NCBI GenBank assembly: GCA_050084985.1
Contig: JBITNC010000001.1
Coordinates: 93,496,001 to 93,560,000 of the forward strand
DNA from: Nageia nagi
Lineage: Eukaryota; Plantae; Pinophyta
Direction of reading: 5' to 3'
Length of the DNA: 64,000 bases
A program made the translations under genes and the position numbers. The notes under the pieces are model-generated. The model saw nothing but the letters and a program-made list of their open reading frames with translations, did no database searches and was not told the DNA's origin. The first letter of the stretch is position 1; each line of letters begins with the position of its first letter. Shown one piece after another: positions 29,201 to 60,694 of the stretch.

Positions 29201-32200
29201 TTACACTAAGAGGCATTCCTATAGTGGTAGCCAAGGGGGCGAGGGAGCCAAAATGTCACTCTATCTATATGTCTGTCATAAATAATGAACTAAATTGAAT
29301 TTGAAAAACTTAAATTTTAATATTAAATCAAATCTATTTGTTATTTTAATAATTATAATAAATAAAAGAAACTTTTTAACAATTTTATTTCACAAAACAA
29401 TTGGCACTTCTCTCTCTTCCATTTCAACTATAACAGTTGGCATTTTCAAAGTGTAAAAACTTTTCATTTCTTGATCTATGCCATTTGAAACTGTAATAGT
29501 TTCCACTTTGCATTTTGGACTTCATGCTTCTAGGTATATTTCTCATTGATTATATTTGATTGTATACAATGATTTATAATTTAATCCAACCAATTTTGAG
29601 CATGAATTCAATATTTTATATGAATATGTAGTGCTAATTTACTTATTTATGTCATAGAATTACAAGTGTATATATAAATCTTAATTTATGAAAGCATTAA
29701 GCTTATCTTTGTATGATTGTGTAGTCTACCTTGTCTGTTGATTTCAATTTATATATGTGGCCTTCAATACTTTGATTCTAAACATGTCTACTCTTTAATA
29801 CATTTATTTTACCAAATTGTGATACATCGTAAAGAAATAAAGATATTCATTCTTCTATTATAAAGATTTATATTAGTTTCTATATACAATTAATTTCTAT
29901 AATTTATAATTAGTTCTCTACTCATATATCATGTATTTTATATTAAAATTTGAGTTTTGTTCAAAGTCTTTCAATTTGAGGCAAAGATACCCACATCAAT
30001 AACCATGGCTTTTGATTTGAAAAAAACTTGGGCTATTGAGAGATCAAGCTTCTATATTGTTATTTGAATTTGAAACCATTCTTAGTTTGAGTTTAGAAAA
30101 ACATGTGTGATGAGATGAAATATTTAAATCAAATAAATTAAAGATTAAATTAAATATTTCAATCAAATAAATTGAAAGTTTAAATAAGAAATATTTTTAT
30201 ACATATAATATAACACATAATTATATTATATATATTATTTGGAATTATATTATTAATTAATTTTAAATTATATTTTTAATATTTCATAAGATAAGTTGTC
30301 ATAACATTTTATATAAAAAAAAATTATTAATAACATATCATTATTAAAAATAAAAATAATATTAATATTAATATCAATAATAACATCATCAATATTTTTT
30401 TATCTCAAAATAATTTTTACAATAATTTATATAAATTTAAAATATATAAGATATTCAAAATAAAAAAAAATATTAATATTATTGTGAAAAGTGAAAAATA
30501 TAAATACTTATAGATTGTTGATAATAAGGGTAAATTATATTATCAAAATGTGGTGAGGAATTTTGTTTGAACCCCAAGAAAACCAATCACAAAATTATTT
30601 CCAAAATACAAAACTGCTACCCAGCTATAACTAGTGGTAGCTAATGTAATATGCAAAAAACTATTAACAAAATAAATTTTAATGATACCCATCTATAACC
30701 TATTAGTAGCCCCAATGTAACCTACTTTATAAATTGATTAAATAGAAAATCATCAAATTATTATCAAAATGCATCTAAATCATAGCTAGGATGCAACCAA
30801 ACTACCTCTTTATTACTGAGATATTCTAATCAATAAATCCTTTGTTCAACCCAAAGGTGGGCTGAGATTTATTGATCAAATGTAGAGTTGATTTCTTTCC
30901 ATTCACTATATCTTTTTCGGTGACTTTCTCTCTAGTATCTCCTCAGGATGGTCTCCCTACATTTCTTTGTCCAACATTTGTTGTCTTTATTTGTTTTTGG
31001 GATTCCATATTGGCCTTCTTCCTTTCATGTTGTTATTTATTGACTATTTGCATTCCTTTCTTTTTTTTCACCCTCCGTATTCTTTCTATGTCTTCCTCTT
31101 CCATAACTTTCATATCTTTTGTCTTGTATTCTAAAAAATTTGAATTGTAATTCATTTCTTCTCTATCTATTCCTTCTAAAATCCGATTGTATTCTTTTTA
31201 TTTTTTCCTATTTTTTAATTTTTGGAATGACTTCCACCCTTGCTCTTTTTGTTTATCTTCATACTCCTTTTCATTTTTTTCTTTTTCTCTCCTTTCTTAA
31301 TCCCTTTCCTCTTCTTTTCAAGGAAATTCTTTGCATAGTGCTCATAACTCTTATAAATTCCACATTGTACTAGCAAATTTTCATATATAATTGATTACAT
31401 CAATTTTCTTCCATATTCTATTTTATATTTTATCTCCTTCATCATAGGTTTGGAAATATCTAAATTAACCACAAATCTTGCTTCTGTAAACTTAAGTTTT
31501 AATCTTTTGATCGCTCAATTATGAAAAGGGATCCAACAAGATGGGTGAAGTTTGAGTAGTGATACCCATGTTGGAATGAGGTTGAAATTTTCACTTTCAA
31601 GGGAGAAGGTTTTATCCCATATTTTATCACTTTTTGCATATCATCATCAAATTGAAATTTGAATAATAAAAATTCTCTTGGGAGAAAAACTAGGGATACT
31701 CAACTTTTGTACTCCATATTATTTTTATCCAACTTTGAATCATATCTAGAGGGGTTCATACCCCAACAAAGAAACCAATAAGGGTTGATTTTAGCCCATC
31801 CTCTTCCTTCTTTGTTATACATTTTGGAATTAATATGCTAAGCTCATAATTAGAGAATTCAATCTCTAGTACCATCCTAATTTCCTCTTTTATGAATGGT
31901 TTTTCTACATCAATATGTTTTTTCATTCCTTGGGGGGCTTTGGATCATGTCATAATCTTGATTTATTCATTGTATTTCAAAAATTATTCGATTATATTTT
32001 GGCAATATTATAGCTTCTCTAAACTATAATTTGCTTAATAATTATATGTTGTTCTTTTGAAACAATTCATCCATGCTTCTATTACTTTATCCTCATACTT
32101 TTGTTACTGTATGCTCGCGCTTCTTCTACATTTTCCTTGGAAACCCTAAAATTTCACACATTAAATGATTATCACTTATTCAATTGAAAATAATTATACA

Positions 32201-35200
32201 TTGTTTAGATACAAGTCAATAATATATTAAAGTTAGTACTATTAATGCAAAAGTTGTAATCTTAATAATGTTTTTTAATATAATACCTCTAAATTTTAAT
32301 ATTAATAGCTTAGAAACAAATGATGAAAAACTCCCAACCATTTTACAATATAGTAGTTTGCAAATAGAGACATGGGACATGAAGAAGAAAGTAAACACAT
32401 AAAATATTAAATTTAAAAAATAAATATAAACATTGTATGATTTTTTTTTTTTAAATATCTTATCCTTGAAACTCTATTAAGGAGTTTAATTGGGTTATAT
32501 AATACTTATAGGCATTTATCTCTAAATAGGTATATATCTTTAAAAGTATATGATTGTAAACATTATTTGAAGAGTACAATAATGAAAATGAGGAACAAAA
32601 AATTCTATCATTCTATATAATGTGTTTACTTTATGCTCTAATCAAGGTGATAATAATGCAATTTAAAAACCTAAAGTATGAGGTTCTTTCGATCTTATAT
32701 ATACATGAACAACTAAGCTCACCAAGTGCATCATAGACATAATTGAAAAACTCAAAATATCACATGAATAATGTTAAGTGCCTATAGACAAAATCATGGA
32801 ATCTTTGTAACAAATAAAAATTAAAGTTTATCATCCTAACCTTAAATGGAAAGTGAGAGATATGAATGTAAAATTCATAAGATGTCATATGAAGAACATT
32901 ACAAGCTTACACTCAAAGGAGTTATTTAGAAACCTCCCAATGTAATATTTTAGATGCTTACACTATGCCCAAATTATCTCTTAAAATAATAAATTACATC
33001 AACCTAAGGCAATATGCATGTAAGTCGAAACTCTAAAGTGGAAGGTTGTATTGCATCCTAACATATATGAGATCCTTCAAGCTTATCTATACATGAACAA
33101 CCTTTATATAAATTATTTAATATTATTCATGATATATTTAGAAATCTTTTAGTGTGAAATTTTAAACATAAAGTTTGTACATCATAACCATACAAATGAA
33201 AGAATATATATAATATCCATCAAGCTTATCTATATATGAACAACCAATCTCATCAAGCATATCATAAACATACTTGAAAAATTTCAACATATCACATGAA
33301 AAACATCCAAAAACTCTCCATATTGATATTTATATTTTTATATTTATATATCTAATTGAAATAATATCATACATCACCTTAAGATGGTAGTCATGTAAAT
33401 TTAAACTCTAGAGTGTAAGGATCTATACATCCTAACCCTAGTAATGAAAGAAAAAATAAAAGTTTCATCAAGCTTATATATACATGAAAAATCAATCTTA
33501 CCAAGTACATCATAGACATTATATTTAAATAAATAGGTGATAAAAGGATTAGTGGATATCATAATGTGTTTAATATTTATCATGGATTAGAATGATATTT
33601 TATTTTTTGATGAATTTTTATGTATCTCTTAATATTACAATCCAATAATCACATGATCACTAATGCCACTAGCTTTGATATAACCCCTTATATATCAAAA
33701 AACCCAAGAGATATCATTTTTGAGGTGCCTATCTTGGGTATATCAATACTAAGAAATGATATAGGTAACTCAAGAATGATATCTCTGAAGGAGAAACTCC
33801 AAAAGCCAAATATTGTATTAATTGGATCTCCTATAAATACATGTATACTCACACACCTAAAACTATTAATGATCACAAATTACCTTAATCCCTAAGGATT
33901 AGGTTTCTAACATTCCCTCCTTTAATCTGCAAGGGATTAAGAATACAAAGATGCCTCTAGGTGTGTAGTAGATGCTACAAAACATTTCTGGAGCTTTTTC
34001 TACAGCCTTTTCTAGAGCTTGACACTTTCTGGAGCTCATTTCTGGAGCTCATCTCTGGAGCTCGTTTCTAGAGCTGGTCTCTGGAGCTCATCTGGTGCAC
34101 GTCTAGCACCAAAAAGCATTTGTAGTTTGGCTCCAGAAACTATTTAAAGGTTTTTGAAATGTTATGAAGCTCAAAGGATTGTAATCTTGCTCCATAGTAA
34201 TGCAATCTGTTATCTGATGTTTCAATATTCTATAATGGTCCTTTTTTTTTCTTCATTTCTGATATGCTGGACACTTCCCTCCAAGAAGCCATCCTCCATG
34301 ATCACCACATACAGCTTGCAACTGAAGGTCTATGAGTCAGCTCTCTGACTCCACGTGATCACCACCATTCTCTTCTGCCATGCCTTCTTTCATCATGCAT
34401 GCAGATCACAACCCTCCAACCAATCATTTGGTGCCCTCACGGTGTTCCCTAGCAACCACCTCCATTTCTGCCTATCACACTTGCCTCCACCTTGCATATA
34501 GCTCATGGCTCCTTGGCCAGTAGTTTGGCATCATTTGGTCACCTCCTACATGATCTTCCATCCATCTGATCTCCTCGTCGCTTCACTCAGCCTCCTCGCT
34601 GTATCGTCACTCCCCAGAATACCATTTTTGACTCAGACTATGAAATGTTTTCCTCCTTATGTGAGCATCACAGTGTGAACCTTTGTGAGCTTCTAACACA
34701 TGGATCTCCCTTCACATCTTCTAGCAGGTCAATCTCCTTCAGCTTACGTGAGCTCCTCCACGCGAGCTCCTCCACGCAAGCTTCAGGCTTTCTCTGCACG
34801 ATCTCAATTAGATTCTTCATGCAATCTCCTCCACGTGAAAAACTAGATTAGTGCTCATGAAACATGTGAATAAAACAATAGAATTATTATTTCTCCTCCT
34901 CTACATCCTTCCTCATGAAAGTCACGCAAACATCTTCTACTCCTCCACGTAGCGTACCTCCTCCATGCAGGTCACATCTCCTCTTTTCTACTGTGCGTGG
35001 GTTTCCTTCACCATTTTTGGGTCATGCCGCCTGACTTGTTCTCCACCTAAGGCTGCATTCTTAGCTTTCAACTGTGCGATGCCTCCTCTATGAGGCATTC
35101 TCTTCTCTTCCTCAGGCTCCATGTGGGGAGGTGCAGTCCAAGACACACCCCTTTCTCCACACAGGCTCTTCTCATGATCCATGCAAGGAGATGCACTCCA

Positions 35201-35597
35201 ACACCCCTTTCTCTGCATGATTTTCTCTCATGCCTCCTCTAGCCATCATTCACATCTCTAGGGCAGTCCTCTACCTCTCTTCAACAGATTCAAATCCCCA
35301 TAACATATTCAAATCTTCATAACCATAGCTGAAACTATGAACCAACAAAAAAACTTCAAACCCTCATCTTGGAGGATGGGCAATGGAGTTCTCCAGATCT
35401 TCTCCAACGAGGCTCTGATACCACTTGAAGGAGAAACTCCAAAAGCCAAATATTGTATTAATTGGATCTCCTATAAATACATGTATACTCACACACCTAA
35501 AACTATTAATGATCACAAATTACCTTAATCCCTAAGGATTAGGTTTCTAACAATCTCTCGATATTTTTTTATATATAAAGGGTTGTATCAAATCTAG
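29201..35597 (+). mobile_element. Non-autonomous Helitron-like element, same family as 51539-58477
   Basis: Its 5' end ttacactaagaggcattcc...gggagccaaaatgtc matches the long copy's 5' end. Its 3' end carries the same long hairpin and ends CTAG at 35597. The other LTR shows the empty site (atta^tttact, 59600/59601) with no TSD. Confidence 0.85.
33786..35552 (-). mobile_element. Very young non-autonomous TRIM-like LTR element (1767 bp)
   Basis: Identical 127-bp LTRs at 33786-33912 and 35426-35552 (TG...CA). TSD atctc. Perfect tRNA-Met PBS TGGTATCAGAGC (35423-35412). PPT AAAGGAGGGAA (33923-33913). No RT or integrase motifs seen. Confidence 0.96.
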
Positions 35598-37573: not shown

Positions 37574-40500
37574 TATTATTGTTCATTTAAGATATATGCA
37601 TCATAGGATGAGAGTCTAAAGTAACAACATAAGTTCATTAAGGTAGCAGCTTCAATCCATAATACATAAGGTGTATGCAATCATCAAAATAAGGTATGGA
37701 TTTGGAAAATATGTTTTTCTTTACTCAAGATTACTCTACAATTTTCTATGTTCTTGAAATATAGAACACATAGCTTGTTGTATTGGGAAGGTCCATATAG
37801 GGTTAAGATATCAATAGGTTATTAGAAGCATACTAGTTTCACTTTGTGTTGATGTAGATTGCATCTTTAGCTAAGAAAAAGAAAAATATATGATGAAACT
37901 TATGATGCATACAAAAAGAATATCCCACTCTTGAAAAGGAGGGATGAGGACCAACATTGTAACACTAATGCTAAAGGGGGAGTTTACCTACTATGATGAT
38001 GATGGGGTATGTGTGCTAGACTTGCAAGAAGATGAATGTTAGTGGAGACCTCAACACTATAGTCCCTTAAGTACTTAGAGTTCTCTGAATTAGAGGTGTT
38101 AAACATCCTTGATGAAATTTTTTCCCCCTATCTCATAATCAAATTGGTGCTAGAAAATAAGGGAATGCCTACAATGTAATATGATATGCTCATGCTATGC
38201 TAAGATAATAATCAAATGGTAAGAACAAGATAAACTACCATGAATCTAGCAGAGAAACATGCTACATGCTCACATGAATGCATATAAGTATAATAAAATA
38301 AGTATATAAGTGCTCCATTACTCCATGATAGCTCCATGTGCTCTTCAACACCTACAAGAATGCTCAAAACATTTCAAAGGAATATGTTAAGGTATGTTAT
38401 GGCTAGTGATTTTGATCTAGGGTTTGGCTAGACAAGATGGGTTGATGGTAATAGCTAAGTGAGAAGACATAAAGTGATGATCGAGAGGAGTTAGAGTGAC
38501 CAAGATTAGGGACAAGGAAAATTGATTTAAAATTAGCTTTATAGGTCAGATGTTGGACTAGTAGATCGATTGACTAACTAGTAGGCGTTAGGCAATTGTG
38601 GACCAATCCTAAACCTAACTCATAAAGTCAAAAATGGCTATGATAAGGTGATAAGATTAAAGTGAAAAGACACAAGGTTATTGAGGATGAAAGGGAAATT
38701 TTAGGTGCTTACATATTTCCCCTTTTGAGGTGAGTATCGTAAGGTGTGAGACTCAACTCAAAAGCTAGAGTGGAAGATGATGATGATGAAAGGATAAAAA
38801 GATAAAAAATGAAGGAAAGGATAAAATGATAAAAAGGTGATGATTAATGACTAATGATATTTTTTTGGCATGCAAGGAGATATAGAGGTATGCAAACCTA
38901 CCACATGCTAAATGATCAAGACTCAAGATGAGTTAAGTGACATGATAAAGTTGTGCTAAATGATCATGACTCAATATGAGTTAAGGATAAATTTTCCCCA
39001 TGCTCAATGAAAAGCAAAGCTAAACCATGGTAATAAGGAACTTATTGCAAAATAATACAATAATGATGGCCATTTCCATATGCTAAATATAAAGCAAGGT
39101 ATGTCAAGGATAAAATTACCTATTATTGTTCATTTGAGATATATGCATCATAGGATGAGAGTCCAAAGTAACAACATAAGTTCATTAAGGTAGCAACTTC
39201 AATCCATAATACACAAGGTGTATGCAATCATCAAAATAAGGTATGGATTTGGAAAATATGTTTCTCTTTACTCAAGATTACTCTACAATTTTCTATGTTC
39301 TTGAAATATAGAAGACATAGCTTGTTGTATTGGGAAGGTCCATATAGGTTAAGATATCAATAGGTTATTAGAAGCATACTAGTTTCACTTTGTGTTGATG
39401 TAGATTGCATCTTTAGCTAAGAAAAGAGAAAAATATGATGAAACTTGTGATGCATACCAAAAAGACTGTCCCACTCTTGAAAAGGAGGGATGAGGACCAA
39501 CATTGTAACATTAATGCTAAAGGGGGAGTTTACCTACTATGATGATGATGGGGTATGTGTGCTAGACTTGCAAGAAGATGAATGTTAGTGGAGACCTCAA
39601 CACTATAGTCCCTTAAGTACTTAGAGTTCTCTGAATTAGAGGTGTTAACCTCCTTGATGAAATTTTTTCCCCCTATCTCATAATCAAATGGGTGCTAGAA
39701 AATAAGGGAATGCCTACAATGTAATATGATATGCTCATGCTATGCTAAGATAATAATCAAATGGTAAGAACAAGCTAAACTACCATGAATCTAGCAAGAA
39801 ACATGCTACATGCTCACATGAATGCATATAAGTACAATAAAATAAGTATATAAGTGCTCCATTACTCCATGATAGCTCCATGTGCTCTTCAACACCTACA
39901 AGAATGCTCAAAACATTTCAAAGGAATATGTTAAGGTATGTTATGGCTAGTGATTTTGATCTAGGGTTTGGCTAGACAAGATGGGTTGACTGGTAATAGC
40001 TAAGGTGAGAAGACATAAGTGATGATCGAGAGGAGTTAGAGTGACCAAGATTAGGGACCAAGGAAAATTGATTTGAAAATTAGCTTTATAGGTCAGATGT
40101 TGGACTAGTAGATCGATTGACTAACTAGTATTGGTTAGGCAATTGGTGGACCAATCCTAAACCTAACTCATAAAGTCAAAAATGGCTATGATAAGGTGAT
40201 AAGATTAAAGTGAAAAGACACAAGGTGATTGAGGATGAAAGGGAAATTTTTAGGTGCTTACATATTTCCCCTTTTGAGGTGAGTATCGCAAGGTGTGAGA
40301 CTCAACTCAAAAGCTAGAGTGGAAGATGATGATGATGAAAGGATAAAAAGATAAAAATGATGAAAGGATAAAATGATAAAAAGGTGATAATTAATGACTA
40401 ATGATATTTTTTTGGCATGCAAGGAGATATAGAGGTATGCAAACCTACCACATGCTAAATGATCAAGACTCAAGATGAGTTAAGGACATGATAAAGTTGT

Positions 40501-45123: not shown

Positions 45124-48100
45124 ATTAGGCTCCCTATCAAATTTTCATGGTTTAAACAATCTTAAAAGAAAAGGAACAAAAGGAAAGAACAACATTGTTG
45201 CTAATCTAAATGTCCCAAAGGTGCCAACCAATTATAAGCAAATAAATATTAATCCTAATTTTTTTTTTTTAATTCAAAACTAATGCATAACCATCCTATA
45301 TGATAAGATAACAATGCTTATATGATTATATTGAGATGATGATTAAGATAGCAATGGTTATTTGTCATTATCTAGTTTCTTCTTGTTCAATTTGGCTATT
45401 ATATTGATTAATGATGATTGATTTTATGGTAAATTGACCTCTTGATTAGTTTCCTAAGGATTGACCTAGTCAAGTGTTTAAGGGTGAAGGCTCAATCTCT
45501 AAGGGAAAACCTAGGCTCAAATGTGATTAAAAATGAAAGGTTAATTAACCAATGATATGTAAATAAATGGATGTAATATTACAAAATTACATCCTTCACA
45601 AGATACGATAAGTTACTCCCATATAAGGATGAAATTTTTACTAATGCAACTAAAAATAAATAAGATAAGTAGTCCTAGGATGAAGACAACAAATAAGACC
45701 TAAGTTAAAGCATGATAAAAGAGGGATATAGGCTTGGGGGTCTCTCGATATAAGCTCCCATAATGTACAATACCTATCTTACATGCTCTGATCCTAATTG
45801 GTATGTTGCATACCAATTAGCAGTACCAACCAATGGATTGATCAAACAATTGGCCAATCGATCATAGTGGTACTTGAAGATTTTTAAAAAGAAGTATAAA
45901 ATGCAAAAGAAAAAAAAATATTACAAACTACATTCAAAATGTTAGCAATGGATTGTTTCCACCTAGTTACAAGGTTGGAACTAGATACAAGATGATAAAA
46001 ATGAATCTAAGCCTAGCTAATAGACTCACACCCTAAAATAAGACCAACCAGTCTTAGGCCCAGCTAATAGATAGATCAGTTTGCTAAAAGTTGACTAAAA
46101 ATTAGGGGCTAATGGAGTAAAGAATAGCTAATAGATTTGGATATAGATTATCATTGAAGGACAAACTAACAAGCTACAAAGAAGTTGATGGGCTAACTAA
46201 TCTACTAAAGATCAATTAGGCTCTATAAATTAGTTTGCACGGAATCAACTAGCAATTGGCTAGGAATGGAGACTCTAGACCTCTAAAATTTGACTTGTCT
46301 CAGCTAGAAGATGATTCCATAAAAGAATTAATGCATTTTAGTGATGAGAAATGATGGAAAACAACAAGAGAAAGGGTAAAAATAACAACACCCAACAAAG
46401 AGAAAGGGTTTGGAAAACTCCTCCAAGTTGAGCTTAATGGACCAAGGGAGATCCCATCATGATCACCATCTTGTGATGTATCCAAAATGGCTGGCCCACT
46501 CTCAAAAAGGAATGATGAGGACAAAGGCTAGAACACCAATGCTAAAGGGGGGAGTTTACCCATTGTGATGATGATGGAGGATGTGTGCTAGATCTGCAAG
46601 AAGATAAATGTTAGAGGGGACCTCAACACTCTAGTCCCTCATGACCTTAGAGTATGCTCAAAGAGAGGTGTTAAACCTCCTTGATGTTATGTAGGCCCCC
46701 TATCCCATAATCAAATGGGCACTAGAAAATAAAGGAATGCCTATAATGCAATATGATATGCTCATGTTATGCTAAGATAATGATCAAATGATAAGAACAA
46801 GGTAAACTACCATGAATCTATCCTAGAAACATGCTACATGCTCACAAAAATGCATAGAAGTACAATAAAATAAAGACACAAGTGATCCATTACTCTATGA
46901 TAGCTCCATGTTCTCTTCAACACCTACAAGAATGATCAAAACATGTCAAAGGAATGTGCTAGGCTATGTTATGGCTAGTGGTTTTTCTCTAGGTTTTGGT
47001 TGAATGAGATGGGTCAATTGGTAACGATTAAGGTGGGAAGACATAGAGTGATGATTGAGAGGAGCTAAAGTGACCGAGATCAAGGAGCAAGGAATATGGA
47101 TTTTAAAATTGGCTTTATAGGCCAGATGTCGAATTGGTAGGATGGTTGACTAACTAGTAGGCCAATTAGGAAATTAGTGGGTTAGTCCTAAACCTAATTC
47201 ATAAATTCAAAAATAGCTATGACAAGGTGACAAGATGAAAGTGATAGGATACAAGGTGATCAAGGACAAAAGGGTAATTTTTAGGTGCTTACAAAACTCT
47301 TCCCTCTCAATGCTTCAATTTCTTTGCACAAAATTTCCTTAAGAACAAGAATTTATTGAGTGTGAAGGTTATTTAGGTGCATATATTTTCCAAAATATTT
47401 CTTAGAATTCAATTTATTGATAGCAATGAAGTTTCCAAAACACAAGAATTATTTCTAGGAGTATTAGTGTATCAAATTCGGCAGAAGTTCCTAAGTTCTA
47501 CCAACTTCAAAGACACAAAAGTACCAAAGTTTGACAAGTTTCAACCATTAAAAATAGTAATAAATATGATTTGGTCTACTTTGTTCAAGTCAATTAGAGT
47601 ATGGGTGAAACCTAGACTTGTTAGTAGTTATGCAGATAAAAACTAGCTTGTTTACAATCACATAAGTGAAAACCAATTGGGTTGGTAGTCATATTATGAA
47701 GAAAAATAATTAAAAGGAAGCAATAGTTGGAAGTCATGAGGTTGAAAACTAGCTTCTTAGCAACCTCATGGTTGAAAACCAAATTTATCACAAGTACATA
47801 GTTACACAATGGACATGATGACATTTGCAAGATGAAGAACCAATTCCTAGGGAATTAATGGAAGAATACTGAGGTTCCTCCCAACATGCCTCCATTAGTT
47901 TTAACTAGTATGCATCTTAATTTTTTTTTTAGATCTAGTTAGAATGTTGTAAATATGTATTCTTGTTACTTTAATATCCCTAAATATTTAACTCATATAT
48001 TAATATCACTAGGTATTTAACTCATATAGTAATAGTAAAATAATGATACTTGTGTAATTATCACCCACTCAGTGGCCACTACTCATGGTATTGCAAGTTC

Positions 48101-48769: not shown

Positions 48770-51200
48770 GCAATATGGAATAGGATCATAAAATATGGTT
48801 TTCCATCTGAAAATGTTTCATGCATTAATGAGGAATTGACAACATATGAAATATGTGTGACTAATAAGCACAAGATTAAAAATTGGAAGTGAAAAACATG
48901 AACCATGGACAAGGAACCATACAAGAAGGTTATGTACAAGAGATATTAGATCAAATGTTCAGGTTCAACTTGCCAATAATGTTTTCTTGACTTAAAGGCT
49001 TTTATATTATATTGGGTATATGTTATTCACTTCCAACTATTGAAAATGCTCTCACCGATATGTTCAAATACTATTCCCAAAAATACAATGTTAACAAAAA
49101 TTATGTGCATAGGACACTTCCAAGTATTAAAGATCAATTCAAATATGGTGATTCTTGGATCCAAAGTTATAGTTGTTGAGAGATATAAGGCAACAAACTT
49201 GTAAGTGATATGATTTAATGAGATTATTACTTACAATATTTTGATTAAAGGCTATTGTATGAGAAGAAAGACTCAAGAAGCTATGGAAGTTATGGATCAA
49301 ATGATGAATTTAGTTTGTATACAAGAAATAATTAGTTACTTCACACATATTGTTGGTCTCCATAAGGAGAATGGATGATATAATTATTTTTCTTTTTGGA
49401 ATTGGAAAAGATTGTTCCTTGATGGAATCAAATGGAAATAAAGTTGGCTCAAGGGTTTCCTATGAATAAAGGTTCTTCAATTCTACATCTCATCTTGCAG
49501 AGCCAGAAAGGAATCCATATTTTATAATTCTTCCTTGCAAGTATGTAGGAAGTAAAGAGAACCTGATGGAGTTGATTATTGAGATTCAAGGTTTGCTAGA
49601 CATCAAAGTTTCAAGGAGAGGGAAGCCTCGTTTTATGCTTGTGATAGTAAAATTCATTGTGGCTTTGCAGAGAGGCCTAAAAGCTCGACAAGCATTAGAT
49701 GTGAACTGTGTAAAAAGTATACGAAAAGTAGGAGCATAAAGTCTGTATTTGGGTTGTAGACACAATGCCTTATCATAATGTAGCCCCTTAACATTAGTCA
49801 ATAAGTCCATATTTCTTGCGTCCACAAGGCATGCATCGAACTGGAACTTAGCAATAGAGTCTATACATGCATCAAAGGCCCTTTAAGTGCAGACTTATGT
49901 TAGATGTTGTGGTGGCTCTGGTAGACATGAATGTGGAATCTTAGTGAAGATATGCATGTGGGTTACCAATGTGCAGGATACGACATGGTTTCATGGATGA
50001 TAATGATAGTAAGCGTATGTAGCATCGATACAAAATGGACTTTATCAGAATAACAAACCTGTGAATCATTTGATGAAATGTAGCTCCAGAAAAGTATGAA
50101 AGCTTTAGTATTTTTTATAATGACTCTAGAGATGTGAGATAAGTATTGAAGATTCCAAAGATTATACTTAGGCTTCGGAGGCGATATTGAAGTGGTTTGA
50201 CGAAAGCAGACGTGACCACATGGCGTTCAATGGGATATAATAAAAAGTATTCCATATAATGAATCAACAAATTGTTTGACTAAATACCTCATCTTATGGC
50301 TCTAGAATTATAACGACTTCATAATTATAATGGCTTCAAAGATTGGATGTAATGAAAGGCACGTAAACTGAGGAGATAGAGCTACAGACGCGACCATGTC
50401 CCTAAATAAATATGCTAAAGTGAGGTACGAGAATTATTTGACCAAGCGCATGATACGGGTGACCATATTAGACAAGGTTGCGAATTGTTTGCCCAGAATC
50501 CTTGATGCAGATTCAGTTTCATATACGGTAATATCGTGAGTTATGCACAACGTGGATACAGACGCGTACTATTTTTTAAAATGACTAATCGAATAAATGT
50601 AGTGATAGTGCACAAATTCTAACACCAACACTCTGTCAACTATGGTCATGTTAGAAACCCAAAATATTGTTGAAAATGGTCTTTTATTTGATGTTAAGGT
50701 TGTGAGTATCGTGATGATATATCTATATACATGGAAAATAACACAAGACTAGTAATTGTTTGATAAAATATGTTGAATGAATAGAATGAAGGATGTTATA
50801 GGTTTGACTAAGTTGAGTGCAAGTGTTGAAGATGTATTTGTAAGTAGAGGTCTTACACAAGCAATAGAAGCATTGGCTAACATGAGACATTGCTTGCTTA
50901 TTGTAGCTGAAGTTTCAAAGTTGCATAGCTAAATGATAGCTAGAATTTTTAGAAGATAGGTTGGAGGGAATGGTACAACTATAGTCATTATATACTCTTT
51001 TCAACCATAAGGTGGATAGGTATGGGAATGATGAAATTGTCCTTGGTTTGATGCATATGATTCAAAATTATTGAAAAGTGTGTTGAGAAAGGTGGTTTGA
51101 TATGGATATGACTTGGTAATGCAATTCATGATGTTCATCTCTCATCTAAATTGGAATCTTCTTTTGGATTTAATATTCATGCATAGATCGTTATGAATTG
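48770..51200 (+). pseudogene. Patchwork of pentatricopeptide-repeat (PPR) gene-like fragments
   Basis: 49217-49378 reads NEIITYNILIKGYCMRRKTQEAMEVMDQMMNLVCIQEIISY (P-type PPR). About 50661-50773 reads QNIVENGLLFDVKVVSIVMIYLYTWKITQD**LFDKI (PLS-type). About 50470-50556 reads ELF/RILDADSVSYTVI/SYAQRG across frameshifts. About 48770-48817 reads IWNRIIKYGFPSENV. Confidence 0.7.
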
Positions 51201-51538
51201 CCTATTTAACATGTCCTTCTTCTAGATAAAAGACTCGGTTACTTTATAGAATGTCACTCGACTGTGCACCTACATTAAGACATATTCCTTTCATTCATCA
51301 TTTGTGGAAACATTTTCATGATAATGTTTTGAATGTAAATCTTAGATAGTGATTTGAAAATAGGGCAACATGATTAGTGGAGAAAATAATTTTGTATGGA
51401 GGAATGGAGTTGAATTTGGGTAGAAGCAGCTTCCATTTAGCAAATCTTGAAGTGCCAACTGGATAAGATGCTTAACAAAAGGTGAAAATTTTATTTTAGA
51501 ATTTCTATCTTACCTTTGGACCTTCAGGTAGTGAATTA
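51098..51538. repeat. 441-bp direct repeat, left copy
   Basis: Matches 58487-58927 with 3 substitutions seen by eye; abuts the Helitron-like 3' CTAG. Confidence 0.95.
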
Positions 51539-51540
51539 CT

Positions 51541-51692
51541 AGCTTTGATATAACCCCTTATATATCAAAAAATGTCGAGAGATATCATTTCGAGGTGCCT
51601 ATCTCATTTCTTGGTATTGCTATATCCAAGATAGGCGCCTCGAAATGATATCTCTCGACATTTTTTGATATATAAGGGGTTATATCAAAGCT
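51541..51692. other. Long terminal hairpin (64-bp arms, 24-nt loop) at the element 3' end
   Basis: 51541-51604 is the reverse complement of 51629-51692 with one mismatch. Confidence 0.96.
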
Positions 51693-51876
51693 GGTGGCAT
51701 CCATCGTCGCGTGATTATTGAATTATAATATTAAGAGATACAATACAAATGCAAATATTATTTTAAAAATAATGTTTAACAAATGAATATGACTCATACA
51801 TAAGGAGTCATTGACAAATAATATTGAGTAAGATTTAAAAAAATTCAAAATTAATCATAGTAATATTGATTTTTGG

Positions 51877-54694
51877 CTACTCCAAAGATTTGAGTCTTTC
51901 TTCTTCAGCTTTCCTTTGCACAACTCCTTTTCCTAATTTCAATTTTGCATAACGATCATATGGAAACGGTGCTAAAATTCTAAGTCCATCCAATGCTTTG
52001 ATGCGAGATATAGCAACAAATGTTAAACCTTGCCTTTCCCTTTCTCCAATATCTATTGTTGCTTTATTAAGTGTCAAACCTTGTGATTTATGTATTGTTA
52101 AGCCCCAAGCCAATCGTAATGGAAGTTGACGTGTTCGACCTCTTTCTATAGGTATAATTGGAACAGCTTTACCTTCAAGTGAACATCCTATAAAATGATC
52201 AAATTCTACCATAACATATGTTGGTAGATCAGGTGGAGAATTCCTTGGTTTGTATACAATTTTTCTAACATATCCCAAAGCACCATTAACAAGTCCAGCT
52301 TCTATCCATAAGTTAGATGTTAGCATAACTCTTGCATTATTTGTAATTAATAACTCAATTTCAAGCTCTTCACTATCACCCCCTCCTTGTTTTGTGCTCC
52401 CTGATTTTGTTGCAATACTACGTGCTACTAGAAAATTTAACTTGAGTAGTTGTAACTATTATGATAAAAAATATTTCATTAGTTAGAAATATATTAATAT
52501 TATATCAAAATTTAGCAAGTAATTCAAAATTCAAAAAAATGGATTTATTTAAAACAAATTCATACCTGTTATGATTATGCACATTTTCATTAGTTGCAAA
52601 TAGATGAATATTCTGATCAAAATCATCCCTTGTAGCCGGATCTAGATTTGAATTTGTTCTTGTCATCAATAATTTCCAATCATCTTCAATTGGATTTGCA
52701 TCTCTTAAATTAATTAAAAGTTGACGAAACCTTTTTTGATCTTCACTCTCTCCTTCTTGTCGAAATACTCTATCTAATGTTATAACAGTTGTGAACTTTT
52801 GCCATAATAATCTTGCATGTCTATCAGTGGCATATGGTGGTCTATCCATAACAGGTGGTAACTGTCCTAAATCACCTACTAAAATGATTGACCTACCTCC
52901 AAAACATATATTTGATTTTTCTGGAAAACCTTCTCGAAGGTGATAATCTGTGTTCCAACATTTTTTTCCCTATGAAGCTCATTTCATCAATCAATATATA
53001 TTTTACATGTTTCATATCTTCTTGAAAAGTATTTAATCTTGATCCCTCTAATTTATCAAATTCTGTGATAGGAATTCGAAGTGCTCCATGGATTGTAGTG
53101 GCACCAATGTTGAATGCAGCAACTCCAGTAGGTGCAGGTAAAAGAAGGGGAGAATGTTTTATAGATGGTAAGTCTTGAAATGCTTGACGAAGTGCTCCAA
53201 TTAGATACGATTTTCTTGTTCCTGCTGTTCCTTGAATTATCATATATAAAGAGTCTATATGTTATTCCTGATTATAATGTGTCATTATTATATCATATGC
53301 TTGTTTTTGTTTCATGCTAAGGCTCTCATATAGGTAATTTAAAGGGGCATCATCATCAATAAATGCACCATTTTGTTTCATTCTGGTTATCCAATTTATT
53401 GCTTTCTTTGTGTATTCTTCTGATATATATTGATTATCCCATTGTGCTTGTCTATCAACATCCCTTCTACCAAGCATATCTATTTCTGTCCTTGTAAAGT
53501 GATTTCCACGATGTAATTGGGCTATAATTTCCCATTCATTCTCTATAGTGTTCTGATGAACTGTTCGTTCATCATCATCTTCTGAATCATTGTGATGTTC
53601 TTGTTCTGTATTTTGGATATTATTCATTCTCTCAATATGCCAAGGCCTATAGTTGAATGCCTCCCAATTTGTTATGATTGTGCTATCATCAACCCTGATA
53701 TCTCTTTCTATATTTCTAAATGGCTTGTAAAGTAACAACTCTGACCAACAAAATTCAATAAATTTTTCCGATTCTTTTTCAGGAATGGTCGTAAAACGTG
53801 GCCATACCCTCACAATAGCTGCATTTTTTCTAGTGCTCCATTTCAACTCACTTCTTCGTCTTGGATTATATGTCCATGATCTAGCTGCATCAATAAGTGA
53901 GATAGTTTTCATCATACATGGTTGTTGAATATATCCATCAATTAAATACTTACCATTTCTTTCTGTTTCTTCTTCATCAATATTTTCCACCTCCTTGAAA
54001 ACTTTTCGTCCAACATTTAGAGAAATAAAAACTCTACTACATTCAACCAATGGAAGCTCTAATAACATATGACATGTTTCTTGTGCTCCTATATCTCTCT
54101 CAATAATTGTTTTAGTTAGAAGACGCCTATATGCTCTTGTTGCTAAATCATCATCATTTTCTAAATTTGTAATTCGCATCAACATTTCTTGATAGGTTTC
54201 TGAACTTTTCTCAGCCTTAGCAACATATTTAGCAATATAATTGATAACAGCATGCTTTGATAGAACAGGTTGCCAATCTACATTTGCTCTCCATAATTGT
54301 AATATATGTCAATTATGTGTATTGACTCGATCATCATTTCTTATTGGTTCATACTTTTTATCTTTGGTTTCTGGATCTTCATATAATTTGGATCCATCTA
54401 AAGATAAAGGCCATGGTGCATTATACCTATAAAAAGAAAAATTAGTTTAACATAAAGGATGATGAATTTAAAATTATAAATATATATAAGTAGTCATAAG
54501 TATTTACCTACAAACCATCTTTCCTCTTTTCTTGCGTAAGCATGCACCTTCTCTACATACAGTGTGACGCTCAACACAATTGAGAATCTCTTCATAATCA
54601 AGATCTAAGTCTACTTGATCAAGTTGATGTGTATTCCTCAAACATGGGTGTTGATTAATATTTTGAAGAAGCTGTGAAATATATACAATGGTTA

Positions 54695-54752
<58 letters not shown>

Positions 54753-57083
54753 TTAAAACATAAAATTAAAAAAATAGATACTTTATGCATACCTGTATAT
54801 TTCGTTGATGTGGGTCTCCTCGAGGATTCCATGCATGCACAATATTATCAAAATATGTTTGTGCTTTTTTCACTTGTTCTTCACTTGTCCAATCTAAATT
54901 ATCCATGTTTGGAGCTCCCTCTATCCATAGAAAACCATGCACATGTGGAGATCCCCTATGTTGCCATTCATATCTACACCAATATTCTTTGACTTTCATT
55001 CATTTTTGCAATACCTCTTTACGAAAAATTGTATTTCGTAGATGCATGTAATGAGCTACAATATGTGGGTAATCAATAATATTTTGTCTTCACCATTTTT
55101 GTGCTTCTCTTGAATCAGATGGCGATGTTCCTGGCATCAAAGCATGAAGGTCAGGCCAATACATATCAGCTGCACTTAAAGTGAAAACAATGGTTGGAGA
55201 TCCAATTTGATGTAATAAATCACTTAATTTAGCACGACTCTTTGTCCAATAAGATCTTGTGTCTCTTAATGTAGAGCCAAAATGCATTAAATGATCTGCT
55301 AAATGTGATTGGGGAATATTATCCATGTGTTCTCGCAATTCATGGATTGTAGTCGGCAAATCTTGAAGACTCTTCTTGACAAACACTGCTGAAGAATTTT
55401 GAGTACGATGTCTCATTATCATGTTCATTATGAAATACCTAAATCTTGGATGCTTTCCAAAATGATGATCTCTATATCGTAATAAATGTTTTGCAAATTC
55501 ATGAAGATAAACTTTTCTATTTCTTGGTTCTATCCAATCATAGTTTCCATTTGGGAATAATGTTGGAAATGCCATATCAAGCAACCCTTCTGTAATATAC
55601 TCATTTATAGGAGATGCTCCAATTCTAGGCCAATCAATGAGTGTTATTGGTTCTGCATTAGGGTTGTTGACCCATGCACAAATTAATTCCATCTCCCTTG
55701 GTGCATTGGGTGGTTTACAGGCCATAGATGTTGTGTGATTAATGATGTTTCCTTCATCCATCTCAATTGTTGGACCCATTACTACATATTCATTCATATC
55801 AGAATTAAACTCCATATGAACAGAGTTTAGAATGTTAAATATGTTTGTATCTGTATTAGCTGGGAGATATCTTAGAACATCTTCATTAATTTGCACATCC
55901 TTATAAAACTTATCATTTTCTATCTTATACTTCAAAGCTTTAAAGACCCTCTCTTTATTTACTGTGAAATTATAATTTGTACCACATTGATCTCTTCTTC
56001 AAACAATAATGACTGGTAATTCATTTATAGGATGAGGTAGTACCTTCGCAATTTGTTTCACTTCTTGTGGAAAGCTAATTGTGTCCCCTTTGTACTTATA
56101 TTGGCCTTCGGTAGCATGTGTTACTTGTAATATTGGATTGACACATGCTATCAACATTTCTTCAATTTGTGTTAAGTTTGATAATTCTGATGGTTGTGAT
56201 CTAGGATCCATGTGATTTGAGGAAGAAAATCGATGAGGAAGAATTTTCTCTTATCTACATCTATTACATGCCGGACCTTCAGTAGTAGATAACACCTTCA
56301 TTCCAGGATAAGATTCTTGGCAAATGTAACATATCGATGGTGATGCAAGTTTTTGTAGTTGACTTCGAAATAAGGTTTGCATTTCTTTGAAATCTATTTG
56401 ATATTTGTATTAGTATGTCCATATGTTCTATTATGATTTGTTTGATTTGCATTCATTTGTAAACCTTCTACATTTCCTTCTCTTAAATGATGTGTTGGAG
56501 GTGTCTCTCCCATTTCAGTTGCTTCATATTGTGTTTGTCTCACCACAATTATATTTCTAGCATTTCTTTCAAAAAAAGAGGATGCATCGGAAACACTTAT
56601 GTTATCATGAACATTATTACGATGTATTCTTTCCTCTCTTTGACTATCTTCCTCAGCTCGTCTAGCACGCTGAAGTTGGCAATCATTCGCACGTTTTCTC
56701 CTAATCTCCTCAAGTTGAAATTGTGTTTGATTTTCTTGGTTTGTTGTTTGTTGTTCCATATATCTTTGGCGTGCTTCTTCTCTTTGATCTTCTGATATTT
56801 TTGCATGTGTTTCTCTCATTTGTTGAGTGTGTATTGCTCTTTGTTCTTCATTGGACATATTAGCACGAGTTTGTCTCTTTCGTTCAGAATCGATTGGTCT
56901 TTGTCGTTGTTTTTGTTCATTTGTCATTTCTGCCCTATGTTTTGCTCGATTTTCTCTTTGTCTTTGTCTTTCTCTCTCTTTGTCACTTTCAGTCATTCTT
57001 TCACGTCATCATCTATTATAATCTCTGTGATATTGTCTATGTTGTTCTTTACTCTGTTGTTCTCTTTGCTCTTCAGAATTCAT
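51877..57083 (-). pseudogene. RepHel transposase: charged N-terminus, DUF6570-like region, HUH Rep domain, PIF1-family helicase; intron-containing, several stops and frameshifts
   Basis: LTQIEEMLIA...GQYKYKGDTISFPQ; MAFPTLFPNG; Rep motifs PTIVFTLSAAD, RYEWQHRGSPHVHGFLW and YIAKYVAK; helicase motifs GTAGT(R)KS, APTGVAAFNI, ILIDEMSFIG, RQLPLRLAWGLTIHKSQGLTL and FVAISR. GT-AG introns at 54792-54672 and 54507-54427 restore the frame; a probable third intron lies at about 52565-52456. Confidence 0.93.
54700..54748. repeat. (TA)n microsatellite within a RepHel intron
   Basis: About 24 perfect TA units inside intron 54672-54792. Confidence 0.97.
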
Positions 57084-58486
57084 TATCTTTGTCACAAATT
57101 TACTACAAAAACATAAGAGAATACATCATTATATTTATTTAAATAACAACTTAAATATATTTACATAATTTTCAAGCAATAATATACTTAAATAATTATT
57201 ATTTTCTAATAACTATTGTTGAACACATCCTAAGATTATTATTAAGATTCATGATATCATCGTCTATTATTCAATAAAATGTAATTACATAAAATATCTA
57301 AGGAAACCAAACATTTGTCATCCTTATCAGGAGACAACTCTGCCATCATAGCATAAGATCATTTGGATCTTTTTAACATGTGAAACGATAAATGTGGAGA
57401 TGAGGAGACAACTCTGCCATCATAGCATAAGATCATTTGGATCTTGTTGCATATGACGTATCTTCACAGCAGTAAAAGAAAGAACATTGGGCATGGCCCT
57501 CACCATTCTTTGTAAGTATGAACTGGAGAGACTGAACTTGTGTTCTTTCTTCTCTTAAATAAAATTTATGTATTTTTTCATCCTCTTAAATATTTTTGAA
57601 ATTTTTTAGTTATATTTTTTATTATACCTATAATATTTTTTTCTTATACCATAAAATTATAATATTATGACAGAACGCATACACAACAGTTTTCGGCAAG
57701 AGGTTTACCGAGCCCAGCAAAAAACTATGGCGATAATGTGGATTCACTACATGAAATGACAACCATATAAAATAATGTTATGGATGACTGTATTGACTCT
57801 ATTAAAGTATAAATATCAATCTACTTATTCAAATATCAAAGTAGAAGTGCATTGGCACTGCGTGGTGGAGATGCATGGCAAATTGAAAACCACGAAATGT
57901 GATGGAAACAATATAAACTAAATTAATTTGGTATAATGGGGATTTTATGATCTTGTGTTGATTTTATTGAATAACTTTCTAATGAAAAGAAGGCATCAAC
58001 AACGAATATGTTAGACCAAGACATGTAAAACTTTGTGAATTCAGAGCATTTTTTGATAAAGTTTTATGCGAACAGCAAGATAAGAAGTGCAAAAGAATTC
58101 AGAGTATAAATTGTATGTAAAATAAGAAATAAGAAATATTACAGTAAAAATATATTTACAATAGTAGAGAATTAACTTACAATAAAATTAAAGTTCTCTT
58201 CTATTTTTACAATCTTATGTTCCAACTTTGCTTGTTCGAATTCACTGCATCTCTCGATTGATTTGGGAATGAATTTTTATGATGTTTGATATTCTTCCTT
58301 CCATTTATATAATAATTTTTGAAAAGATGTGTCTTTTAATATTTCAGTCGGCTATATAATTTTAATTTTAAAAAAATTATTTTTCCGCCAATTGTTTAAC
58401 GGACGGACTCACATGCGACATTTTGCTCCCCCACTCCACCCCCCATGTTGCAGCTGTAGAAACGCCTCTCGGTGTAATGCAATTCA

Positions 58487-58927
58487 TGATATGGATATGA
58501 CTTGGTAATGCAATTCATGATGTTCATCTCTCATCTAAATTGGAATCTTCTTTTGGATTTAATATTCATGCATAGATCGTTATGAATTGCCTATTTAACA
58601 TGTCCTTCTTCTAGATAAAAGACTCGGTTACTTTATAGAATGTCACTCGACTTTGCACCTACATTAAGACATATTCCTTTCATTCATCATTTGTGGAAAC
58701 ATTTTCATGATAATGTTTTGAATGTAAATCTTAGATAGTGATTTGAAAATAGGGCAACATGATTAGTGGAGAAAATAATTTTGTATGGAGAAATGGAGTT
58801 GAATTTGGGTAGAAGCAGCTTCCATTTAGCAAATCTTGAAGTGCCAACTGGATAAGATGCTTAACAAAAGGTGAAAATTTTATTTTAGAATTTCTATTTT
58901 ACCTTTGGACCTTCAGGTAGTGAATTA
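58487..58927. repeat. 441-bp direct repeat, right copy
   Basis: Matches 51098-51538; separated from the element 5' end by a 9-bp piece copied from inside the repeat. Confidence 0.95.
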
Positions 58928-59464
58928 TTAACTAATATATAAGATGCATACACCATAATATGCAAGCAATTCAATAAAGTAAAGAAATGATAATGTTTCC
59001 ATCGTTAGACTATAACCAATATTATCTAACTTGAACCATAATATATTATCTTGAATATGTTAACCAATTCCATTAGCTTACACATAAAAGTAATACTCTT
59101 ATGGTGATTATTAATAATATATAGTCATTAAGATTTGAAGGATGTAAATTTATAGTATTGGTAAGGCTCATAGTTCATTTCATCTAAACATTTCTATAAA
59201 CGATGTTGTTGGTTGATGGTATTCTATTATCTTGTAGACATTATAAGTCAGTGCATTAGTTGAACAATTCAACTAGAAAAACACATAGGGTTAAAACATA
59301 GGAGATATCATAGTGAATCTTTAAGGAGTAAGCAAGATCAAATGATAATTGGAGCATGAAGAATGATTATGGATGAATGCAAGTGATATTTCAGTGACCT
59401 TGTGGGAGTAATATGCGAAGCTTTGGTTGCATCACAAGCTACAACAATTAAAGTGTGGGGGAAT

Positions 59465-60694
59465 TGATGAGACAAAATATTTACCTCATATTGACATAAA
59501 AACATCACTATTATAATGCCATAAGGAAACTCTAGTAATAGGATTGTATATTTTAATGTGTTTAATTAGCCTAAATAGATTAAGATGTTACACTTTATTA
59601 TTTACTAATATTTTTTATGGTTTTGAAGTATTAACAAGAAGACTTATATTATTGATATTTAAAAGTGTTTTAATATTATTTATTTGGCATCTCTTCTTGA
59701 AAGCTAAGGTTAAATGGAGGACCTTCTTCTTAGCATAAGTGGAAATATAAAGATTTGGTACATTTTATGTTCTATAGTCTTTAGAAATAAATTAATCTCT
59801 CTATTTGTATAAACACTTCATGCTTGGCATTCGAAGGAAAATATTTGGCATCATATGGAAGATGGAATATTGCACATATATCAAATTTGGAAAATTCATA
59901 GCTTGTTGGATACAACAAGATTTAGAGGTACCATGAGCATACAAGATTGGAAGATATAGCATGATTCAAATTTGAATATTCTTGCAAATATGGAGGTGAT
60001 ACTATATCTTATAAATTTATATACACAAATCATAGACTAGTAAAGCATTCTATCTGCTATAGCCTTAAAGAACTGGATGTGGGTAAAATATGGCATTAGA
60101 GATTTGATTTCCAGCTATTACAAATGAATAGAGTAGGGTTTTGTTATTTTTGTTGGAAGAATGTAATAAATCCTCTTCTTGTATGTGAGATTAGAGGTTA
60201 GATAGTGAAAGATAGATTTTATATTTGGAATGGGTTTTGAAGCATTAGATAAAGAAATACTTTTAGGTTCTTTCTAAACTCTTGAGTCTTCCTCTTCAGG
60301 GAATCTACTAGTGAAGTCTAGTCAAATTCACTAGTAGGTTCTACCTTGCTCATTCCTTTTATATGTTTAATGTTATTTCCTTATTATTTTTTGAATGATG
60401 GTTGTTTATTACTTTGGTTATTGATTATAATATTGTATATTTTGTTCATGATGTGTTTCCTAGGTTTATATAGCTGCATCTATATATTTTCTCATTTGAT
60501 TTTATTTGCATCTCAATTCCAACAAGTTAATTTCATGCTTTTATTTTAATTTTTGCAAGTTTTCTTTGATTTCTAAATTCTGTGAGTGTGTTTTCCTAGA
60601 AACCATGAATATAAAATAAATTCTTGATTGGACATAACCCTTGGACACTTGAACCCTAGATTGACAAATTAAATGGTGAATTGATGACTCACCA
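59465..60694 (+). repeat. 3' LTR of the Athila-like element
   Basis: tgatgagacaaaat...gactcacca; aligns with 29065-29200 and 35598-36538; preceded by the PPT. Confidence 0.9.

Follow-up and report, generated by a model that had tools for sequence, protein, structure and literature searches.

Proto-Helentrons and the Element E

Among the described rolling-circle transposons, the closest system is proto-Helentron-Pi of Phytophthora infestans. It codes for a RepHel protein (Rep plus helicase) of 1,783 amino acids which groups with Helentrons, contains the residues G-S-P-H and lacks an endonuclease. The element starts with 5′ TT, ends with 3′ CTAG and was found inserted between A and T without duplication, as supported by an empty site (Thomas, Vadnagara, Pritham 2014, Mob DNA 5:18, PMC4067079). 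Proto-Helentron is counted as one of four structural variants (Heringer and Kuhn, 2021). In the HELIANO study it is given as reported from Phytophthora only, with no similar sequence in 404 genomes, and elements of the HLE2 branch are listed for 13 land-plant species; in addition, 12-nt inverted repeats and a 5′ stem-loop were ascribed to the Phytophthora proto-Helentron on re-reading (HELIANO 2024, PMC11417382). Between the two great eukaryotic rolling-circle branches, no published link other than proto-Helentron exists, and it is based on one oomycete family with questioned ends. Here, a further element, termed E, was analyzed in a stretch of 64,000 nt from Nageia nagi (contig JBITNC010000001.1, positions 93,496,001 to 93,560,000 of the forward strand), which is called the window in the following.

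51539..58477, minus strand: element E, autonomous-type but dead, assigned to HLE2, 5′-TTACAC...CTAG-3′, 6939 bp (Pfam, collinearity with the Cryptomeria protein P0219, comparison of ends)

Element E most probably is an inactivated copy of a gymnosperm rolling-circle family with a HUH-Y2 Rep and a PIF1 helicase, in which a transposase of the HLE2 branch is combined with the proto-Helentron layout. Its layout is best filed as proto-Helentron, as it lacks an endonuclease, starts with 5′ TT, ends with a 3′ foldback closing on CTAG and is inserted at A^T, without target duplication and without terminal or subterminal inverted repeats. Domains, motifs, ends, copies, copy abundance and gene decay are observed features, as are a duplication and a filler at the 5′ junction.

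The first-pass annotation, made from the letters alone, had proposed an HLE2-type enzyme with canonical-like ends. This proposal is supported by G-S-P-H and DUF6570 for the enzyme and, for the ends, by the hairpin with CTAG, a target best read as A^T and the lack of HLE2-style inverted repeats. Its further suggestion of a possibly undescribed structural variant could not be upheld, since the same combination was published in 2014 as proto-Helentron-Pi (PMC4067079), and both land-plant HLE2 elements and the DUF6570 marker are found in PMC11417382. An earlier description with such ends exists for the kind of element, but not for the family of E, whose new features are its occurrence in gymnosperms, its very high copy number and its long 3′ foldback.

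Structure of the RepHel Gene

The long reading frames in E are solely fragments of one RepHel gene. For the RepHel searches single stop-free pieces were used, with the exons unjoined and the gene unrepaired. The following features were identified:

56254..56409, minus strand: Zn-finger-like CxxC...CxxC stretch at the RepHel N-terminus (translation), separated from the next piece by the stop at 56253-56251
56002..56250, minus strand: DUF6570 (PF20209) N-terminal domain, N-terminal to Rep motif 1 (Pfam, E 5.3e-14, match 56211-55999)
55093..55998, minus strand: N-part of the Rep domain, Helitron_like_N positions 1-132 (Pfam, E 1.8e-15, match 55935-55090)
54937..54957, minus strand: HUH motif RGSPHVH with the Helentron-type G-S-P-H signature, inside the stop-free piece 54999-54769
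54700..54765, no strand: (TA)n microsatellite in a probable intron that separates the HUH exon from the H-C-C-C exon; the reading frame differs across the microsatellite
54507..54578, minus strand: H-C-C-C cluster ERHTVC..CLRK..CR (ERHTVCREGACLRKKRGKMVCR) between Rep motifs 2 and 3 (HUH and Y motifs)
54216..54245, minus strand: Rep motif 3 with two catalytic tyrosines, INYIAKYVAK (translation, alignment to P0219)
51880..53261, minus strand: PIF1-type helicase in the three stop-free pieces 53261-52896, 52969-52508 and 52455-51880 (Pfam PIF1, E 6e-11, match 53243-52893; tblastn with P0219)

The HUH part gave an additional Pfam match to Helitron_like_N (E 6e-6). When 28 full-length HLE2 relatives were aligned, the H-C-C-C cluster fell on near-invariant columns with the consensus VQRHxxCxxxYCLRK...CRF, of which H and the first C are invariant or nearly so. 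The Zn-finger-like stretch fits the CxxCxE...CxxC consensus of 28 relatives, and the alignments of the proteins P0220 and P0198 begin there, at about 56394 and 56382, respectively. RepHel of E likely has one to three short introns, e.g., one spanning the (TA)n microsatellite at 54700-54765.

The closest full-length relative is the RefSeq protein P0219 of Cryptomeria japonica, which has a length of 1309 amino acids and consists of DUF6570, Rep and PIF1 without an endonuclease. It is collinear with the window from 56211 to 51880 at 58-71% identity, and its last residues align at 51880. No C-terminal endonuclease was detected in E, as Pfam gave no match to PF03372 and the open reading frame ends where P0219 ends. 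Since the protein stops at 51880 like P0219, only 340 nt of the element remain, and 157 of these belong to the foldback. Helentrons in the strict sense carry an apurinic/apyrimidinic endonuclease fused C-terminally to the helicase. No such fusion was found in E, which is therefore not a Helentron in this sense. All four protein features named by the first-pass annotation were recovered in this way: the RGSPHVH motif (54957-54937, minus strand), the DUF6570-like block, which is sited N-terminal to Rep motif 1, the H-C-C-C cluster between Rep motifs 2 and 3 (54578-54507) with its conservation in the 28 relatives, and the missing endonuclease after the helicase.

For the assignment to a branch, two markers are available. 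The S between G and P in Rep motif 2 is diagnostic for Helentrons as opposed to Helitrons (Thomas et al., 2014, PMC4067079), and DUF6570 was found solely in the HLE2 clade and proposed as its marker (HELIANO 2024, PMC11417382). Both are present in E, which has G-S-P-H and not G-L-P-H, with DUF6570 upstream of Rep. The Rep piece of 302 amino acids had 2409 matches among 1.84 billion representatives. When full-length relatives were used for a profile search, 63 proteins were obtained; 58 of these contain PF20209 and two the Helentron endonuclease PF03372. Others among them bear OTU or Herpes_teg_N, both of which have been reported in HLE2 elements, OTU also in HLE1 (HELIANO, PMC11417382). Searched against the PDB, the Rep piece did not reach Helraiser, the solved HLE1 transposase; the HLE2 profile found it at 3e-64, ranked below cellular Pif1 helicases. 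The markers and the make-up of the homologue set support an enzyme of the Helentron/Helitron2 (HLE2) type.

That E is a canonical HLE1 plant Helitron, in which G-S-P-H and DUF6570 were over-read, is hardly credible. Such an element would account for the 3′ CTAG, the hairpin and A^T as the best target reading, but not for the DUF6570 match (E 5e-14), for G-S-P-H instead of G-L-P-H or for a 5′ end with TT and not TC. It is also at odds with the profile-search relatives, which carry DUF6570 in 58 of 63 cases, some together with the Helentron endonuclease, and with the Rep piece not reaching Helraiser.

The RepHel gene of E is a dead pseudogene with at least six stops, one frameshift and a change in Walker A. 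Stops opposite P0219 residues lie at 56001-55999, 55092-55090, 55002-55000, 54311-54309 and 53264-53262, and another one at 56253-56251 was judged against the longer models P0220 and P0198. The frameshift is located in the helicase near 52954. Walker A reads GTAGTRKS at 53231-53208 (minus strand) compared to GTAGTGKS in P0219, which is an exchange of G to R. Contigs of public runs have an alternative base at the stops 54311 and 53264, so that other copies without these stops exist.

The differences between the window and these contigs over 53000-58999 are mostly G>A and C>T, and several stops of E occupy positions where the relative has Arg. The excess of G>A and C>T fits a deamination decay of a methylated repeat.

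Termini and Partner Copies

The ends of E were determined by comparison with a second copy in the window, a paralogous empty site and contigs from outside the window:

58472..58477, minus strand: 5′ terminus TTACAC, first T at 58477; the likeness to copy 2 starts here, as does that of 18 contigs of run X7
51539..51542, minus strand: 3′ terminus CTAG, followed by a host T at 51538; common to E, copy 2 (35594-35597) and the contig L001 (6254-6257), with T as the next base in all three
51538..51695, minus strand: 3′ terminal foldback with 67-nt arms and a 24-nt loop, its stem reaching into the CT of CTAG (repeat search, 97% complementary)
29201..35597, plus strand: copy 2, a non-autonomous partner, similar to E only at the termini, over about 80 nt on the 5′ side and about 220 nt on the 3′ side
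59465..59996, plus strand: paralogous empty site for copy 2, ...TTATTTACTAA..., with the junction near 59601/59602 (repeat comparison)

The likeness between E and copy 2 starts at A|TTACAC and stops at CTAG|T. Copy 2 contains no open reading frame of 100 or more amino acids. Its limits are set by the empty site, which reads ...TTATTTACTAA... when empty and ...TTATT-ACAC...CTAG-TTTACTAA... when occupied, and no target-site duplication is found there. The contig L001, a metagenome contig of the Joint Genome Institute (JGI), represents a third copy, which is identical to E in 84.5% of positions over 4.7 kb. It shares the foldback, ends with ...CAAAGCTAG|TT and is a pseudogene with 15 stops. An exact search of metagenome contigs for the 3′ end motif gave no match. 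At the 5′ side, 18 contigs of run X7 match up to 58478 and then diverge into AT-rich DNA, so that the 5′ limit is a property of the family and the A before TT is shared. The ends that the first-pass annotation had derived from two copies, TTACAC...CTAG between A and T with an ambiguity of 1-2 nt, are therefore confirmed by copy 2 and its empty site, the 3′ end of L001 and the 18 contigs.

The 3′ foldback has a predicted DNA folding energy of -71.4 kcal/mol (z -19.5). It is conserved in copy 2 and L001, where the left arm itself starts with CTAG. In canonical HLE1 elements, a short hairpin lies about 10-12 nt upstream of CTRR; E has CTAG, yet its hairpin has 67-nt arms and is paired with the CT of CTAG. 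A 5′ TC, as in canonical HLE1, was looked for as well, and both E and copy 2 begin with TTACAC instead.

An inverted repeat of the HLE2 type, with 12-16 nt in 5′-terminal and 3′-subterminal position, was not found when the first 40 nt were compared with the last 500 nt of E and copy 2. The best matches were 9/12, 10/14 and 11/16, and more than half of the shuffled sequences reach these values, which agrees with the first-pass annotation, where no subterminal inverted-repeat pair had been seen. A 5′ stem-loop is likewise missing in E (z +0.75).

A long palindrome was also observed in L008, a metagenome contig with a distant relative (50% Rep identity). It has 82-nt arms and lies at 13338-13526, about 290 nt past RepHel, in a single copy. 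This palindrome suggests that a long 3′ foldback is characteristic of the lineage.

The Aberrant 5′ Junction

Element E is flanked by two copies of a host sequence R, and a short filler separates one of them from its 5′ end:

51098..51538, no strand: R1, first copy of a direct duplication of 441 bp of host DNA, three differences from R2
58487..58927, no strand: R2, second copy of the duplicated 441 bp; the junction R2|X retains an unoccupied A^T site
58478..58486, no strand: 9-nt filler TGCAATTCA (given for the plus strand) between the 5′ end of E and R2, with its template 31 nt away

Along the minus strand, the parts are arranged as X-R2-filler-E-R1-Y, where X and Y are the adjoining sequences. 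The 3′ junction of E is regular (CTAG|TAATTC), and R starts with the T of the A^T site that is intact at X|R2. A 17-mer made up of the 9-nt filler and 4 nt on each side (GTAATGCAATTCATGAT) occurs at 58474-58490, 58505-58521 and 51116-51132, i.e., three times in the window compared to none expected. Such a templated filler bounded by 4-nt microhomologies is typical of polymerase-theta-type end joining. In E, the A preceding TTACAC belongs to the filler and not to the target; the evidence of E for A^T therefore consists of the 3′ junction and the X|R2 site.

The 441-bp repeat most likely is a repair product and not a regular target duplication. Two other explanations of the repeat were rejected. 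As repeats of a long terminal repeat (LTR) retrotransposon, R1 and R2 would lack a short target duplication, a primer-binding site and a polypurine tract, and a templated filler is present at the junction. As a part of the element, in the form of a tandem or read-through copy, R would be expected in other copies, but no R follows the CTAG at which copy 2 and L001 end, and with a depth of 0-8 in the public runs R is low-copy.

During the insertion of E, of the two ends only the 3′ end would have been joined by Rep in the canonical way (CTAG|T at the R/X site). A strand-displacement synthesis through the 441 nt of host DNA R was most likely primed by the free 3′-OH of the target. The host may then have joined the new end to the 5′ end of E by microhomology-mediated end joining, which would yield the 9-nt templated filler and the order X-R-filler-E-R-Y. 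The aberrant 5′ junction of E would thus record, as a natural footprint, a Helitron integration that was only half completed.

Target Site

As the element starts with T and a T follows it, one base fits on either side. Read as TTACAC...CTAG, the target is A^T at all three sites, which is the sole uniform target dinucleotide. Read as TACAC...CTAGT, it is T^T for copy 2, T^A for E and T^T for L001, and the conserved upstream A is left unexplained. The unoccupied X|R2 junction of E reads ...TTAA^TAAT.... An A^T target with TTACAC...CTAG ends is therefore favoured.

The second reading would make E an ordinary HLE2 element whose ends were set one base off, with TACAC...CTAGT inserted after T, like Helentrons and Helitron2, and both CTAG and A^T as artefacts of the ambiguous T. 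We consider this improbable. It is permitted as T^T by the empty site of copy 2 (TTATTTACTAA) and agrees with L001, which reads CTAGT|T, but the site of E would become T^A. Moreover, the A two bases upstream of TACAC is common to 18 independent contigs, which a T^T target does not explain, and the inverted repeats that define HLE2 are absent.

Comparison With Described Systems

With TTACAC...CTAG ends at A^T, E resembles proto-Helentron-Pi in its G-S-P-H RepHel without endonuclease, in 5′ TT, 3′ CTAG and a 3′ palindrome, in its insertion at A^T without duplication and in having its limits derived from empty sites. They differ in their host, which is a gymnosperm for E and an oomycete for proto-Helentron-Pi, and in their size, as E has about 7 kb with RepHel alone, whereas proto-Helentron-Pi has about 14 kb with SET, TIR/ankyrin and hypothetical open reading frames. 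The family of E has very many copies compared to about 25 for proto-Helentron-Pi. Furthermore, the foldback of E has 67-nt arms which take in part of CTAG, unlike that of proto-Helentron-Pi. Neither the 12-nt inverted repeats nor the 5′ stem-loop claimed for the oomycete element were found in E.

With HLE2, Helitron2 and Helentron elements (HELIANO, PMC11417382; FoHeli of Fusarium, PMC5148889), E shares DUF6570, GSPH, the H-C-C-C cluster, PIF1 and a stem-loop at the 3′ terminus. It differs from them in the lack of the 12-16-nt inverted repeat, in A^T as the best reading compared to T^T, and in CTAG compared to, e.g., ATTTT or CTCCTGT. Canonical Helitrons (HLE1), like Helraiser and the plant Helitrons, have in common with E the CTRR-type CTAG with a hairpin, A^T, the lack of a target duplication and partners sharing only the ends. 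However, E has 5′ TT instead of TC, a hairpin with 67-nt arms extending to the terminus instead of a short one about 10-12 nt upstream, and a Rep with G-S-P-H and DUF6570 which shows weak similarity to Helraiser.

Besides the ambiguous base at the ends, several points weigh against E as an HLE2-branch proto-Helentron. The reference kind is itself disputed, because of the re-reading in the HELIANO study. The tree described below holds only DUF6570-type relatives and no labelled HLE1, Helentron, Helitron2 or Phytophthora references, so that the HLE2 assignment rests on the markers and the company of homologues. In addition, only three 3′ ends were observed, and no intact copy of the family was seen, E and L001 both being pseudogenes. 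No Phytophthora RepHel was returned by three homologue searches or the representative search. A search of the Atlas gave generic Helitron clusters only, and a literature search for Helentrons in gymnosperms gave nothing relevant.

Gymnosperm Lineage and Abundance

The nearest named proteins to the Rep piece are from Cryptomeria japonica (P0169, 76% identity over the whole piece) and also from Ginkgo biloba. A quick maximum-likelihood tree was built from 94 Rep segments, all from DUF6570-type relatives, and in it Rep of E grouped with six Cryptomeria proteins with a value of 100 in the SH-like approximate likelihood ratio test (SH-aLRT). This group is nested in a clade of 16 rows (SH-aLRT 100), in which all named members are from Cryptomeria or Ginkgo. 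The plant genome assumed by the first-pass annotation can thus be narrowed down to a gymnosperm, given these neighbours.

Sequence of the window is present in 20 public runs from 13 studies, among them air metagenomes. The abundance was analyzed by placing contigs of four runs (X1, X6, X7, and X11) on 53000-58999, i.e., the 5′ end was covered; as the public runs consist of contigs and not of reads, the depths are not copy numbers. Thousands of contig pieces were placed over the coding region and the 5′ end, and the summed depth drops from thousands to 0-8 beyond 58600. The family of E is very high-copy in several public runs.

The air metagenomes X2, X4, X8, X9, X12, X16, and X17 contain 24-56% of the words of the stretch. 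This is consistent with airborne pollen of a wind-pollinated host, e.g., a conifer, or of close relatives carrying the high-copy family. Within the 5′ untranslated region of E, the section 57200-58000 showed a depth of 150-530 in run X1 and of 7-54 in X6, X7, and X11, and on its two sides the coding region and the 5′ end have a high depth in each of the four runs. The section appears to be a subfamily- or species-specific insert.

These depths also bear on a composite origin, in which an HLE2 coding region lies inside, or has recombined into, the shell of a canonical non-autonomous HLE1 Helitron, so that enzyme and ends do not belong together. Helitrons often nest and capture DNA, and 57200-58000 is indeed subfamily-specific, being deep in X1 and shallow in X6, X7, and X11. 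Nevertheless, a composite is very improbable. In L001, an independent copy, coding region and foldback-CTAG are arranged and spaced as in E, with 84-86% identity, the contig depth extends beyond the coding region to the 5′ end in three of the four runs, and the more distant L008 has an 82-nt-arm palindrome about 290 nt after RepHel, too. Furthermore, no second set of ends was found within E, and its 5′ end is TT and not TC.

If E is a member of an HLE2 family with the proto-Helentron layout, a second, independent and very abundant lineage, found in seed plants, would provide confirmation that an HLE2 enzyme is workable with Helitron1-like ends. Tools which seek inverted repeats would then mis-annotate such HLE2 families in conifer genomes. 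The family would also provide a tractable system for the DNA features recognised by the two Rep clades, as seemingly intact Cryptomeria genes exist.

A wider generalization is more tentative, and we regard it as possible rather than probable. According to it, gymnosperms hold an old, diversified and hugely amplified HLE2 lineage, all of it with Helitron1-like ends (TT...foldback-CTAG, A^T), so that the type of the ends and the Rep clade are uncoupled. The layout would then be widespread and possibly be the ancestral HLE2 state, mis-bound by annotation based on inverted repeats, or it would point to a horizontal transfer between conifers and oomycete pathogens.

Proposed Transposition Mechanism

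The transposition chemistry, like the repair pathway at the 5′ junction, was deduced, in this case from the established behaviour of Helraiser and other HUH enzymes. By analogy, an intact family member would provide RepHel in trans. Rep would nick the top strand at A|TT, and the helicase would peel off the strand from 5′ to 3′ until the long foldback and CTAG indicate where to stop and to make the second cut. The strand released in this way would circularise and be pasted into single-stranded A^T sites. The non-autonomous copy 2 (29201-35597) would have retained the end signals only. In such a cycle, E, itself dead, would be a copy of a gymnosperm HLE2 family that was mobilised in trans.

Further Repeats in the Window

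A small retrotransposon is nested in the foldback of copy 2:

33786..35552, minus strand: small LTR retrotransposon similar to terminal-repeat retrotransposons in miniature (TRIM-like), 1767 bp, with 127-bp TG...CA LTRs, the 5-bp target-site duplication ATCTC and the primer-binding site TGGTATCAGAGCC

Its primer-binding site TGGTATCAGAGCC fits the initiator tRNA-Met. Additionally, further large dispersed or direct repeat families were found in the window at 8035-9641 and 20344-22373 as well as at 37568-40484 and 46470-47293, and arrays with a period of 100 nt are located at 8774-9473 and 21431-22130.

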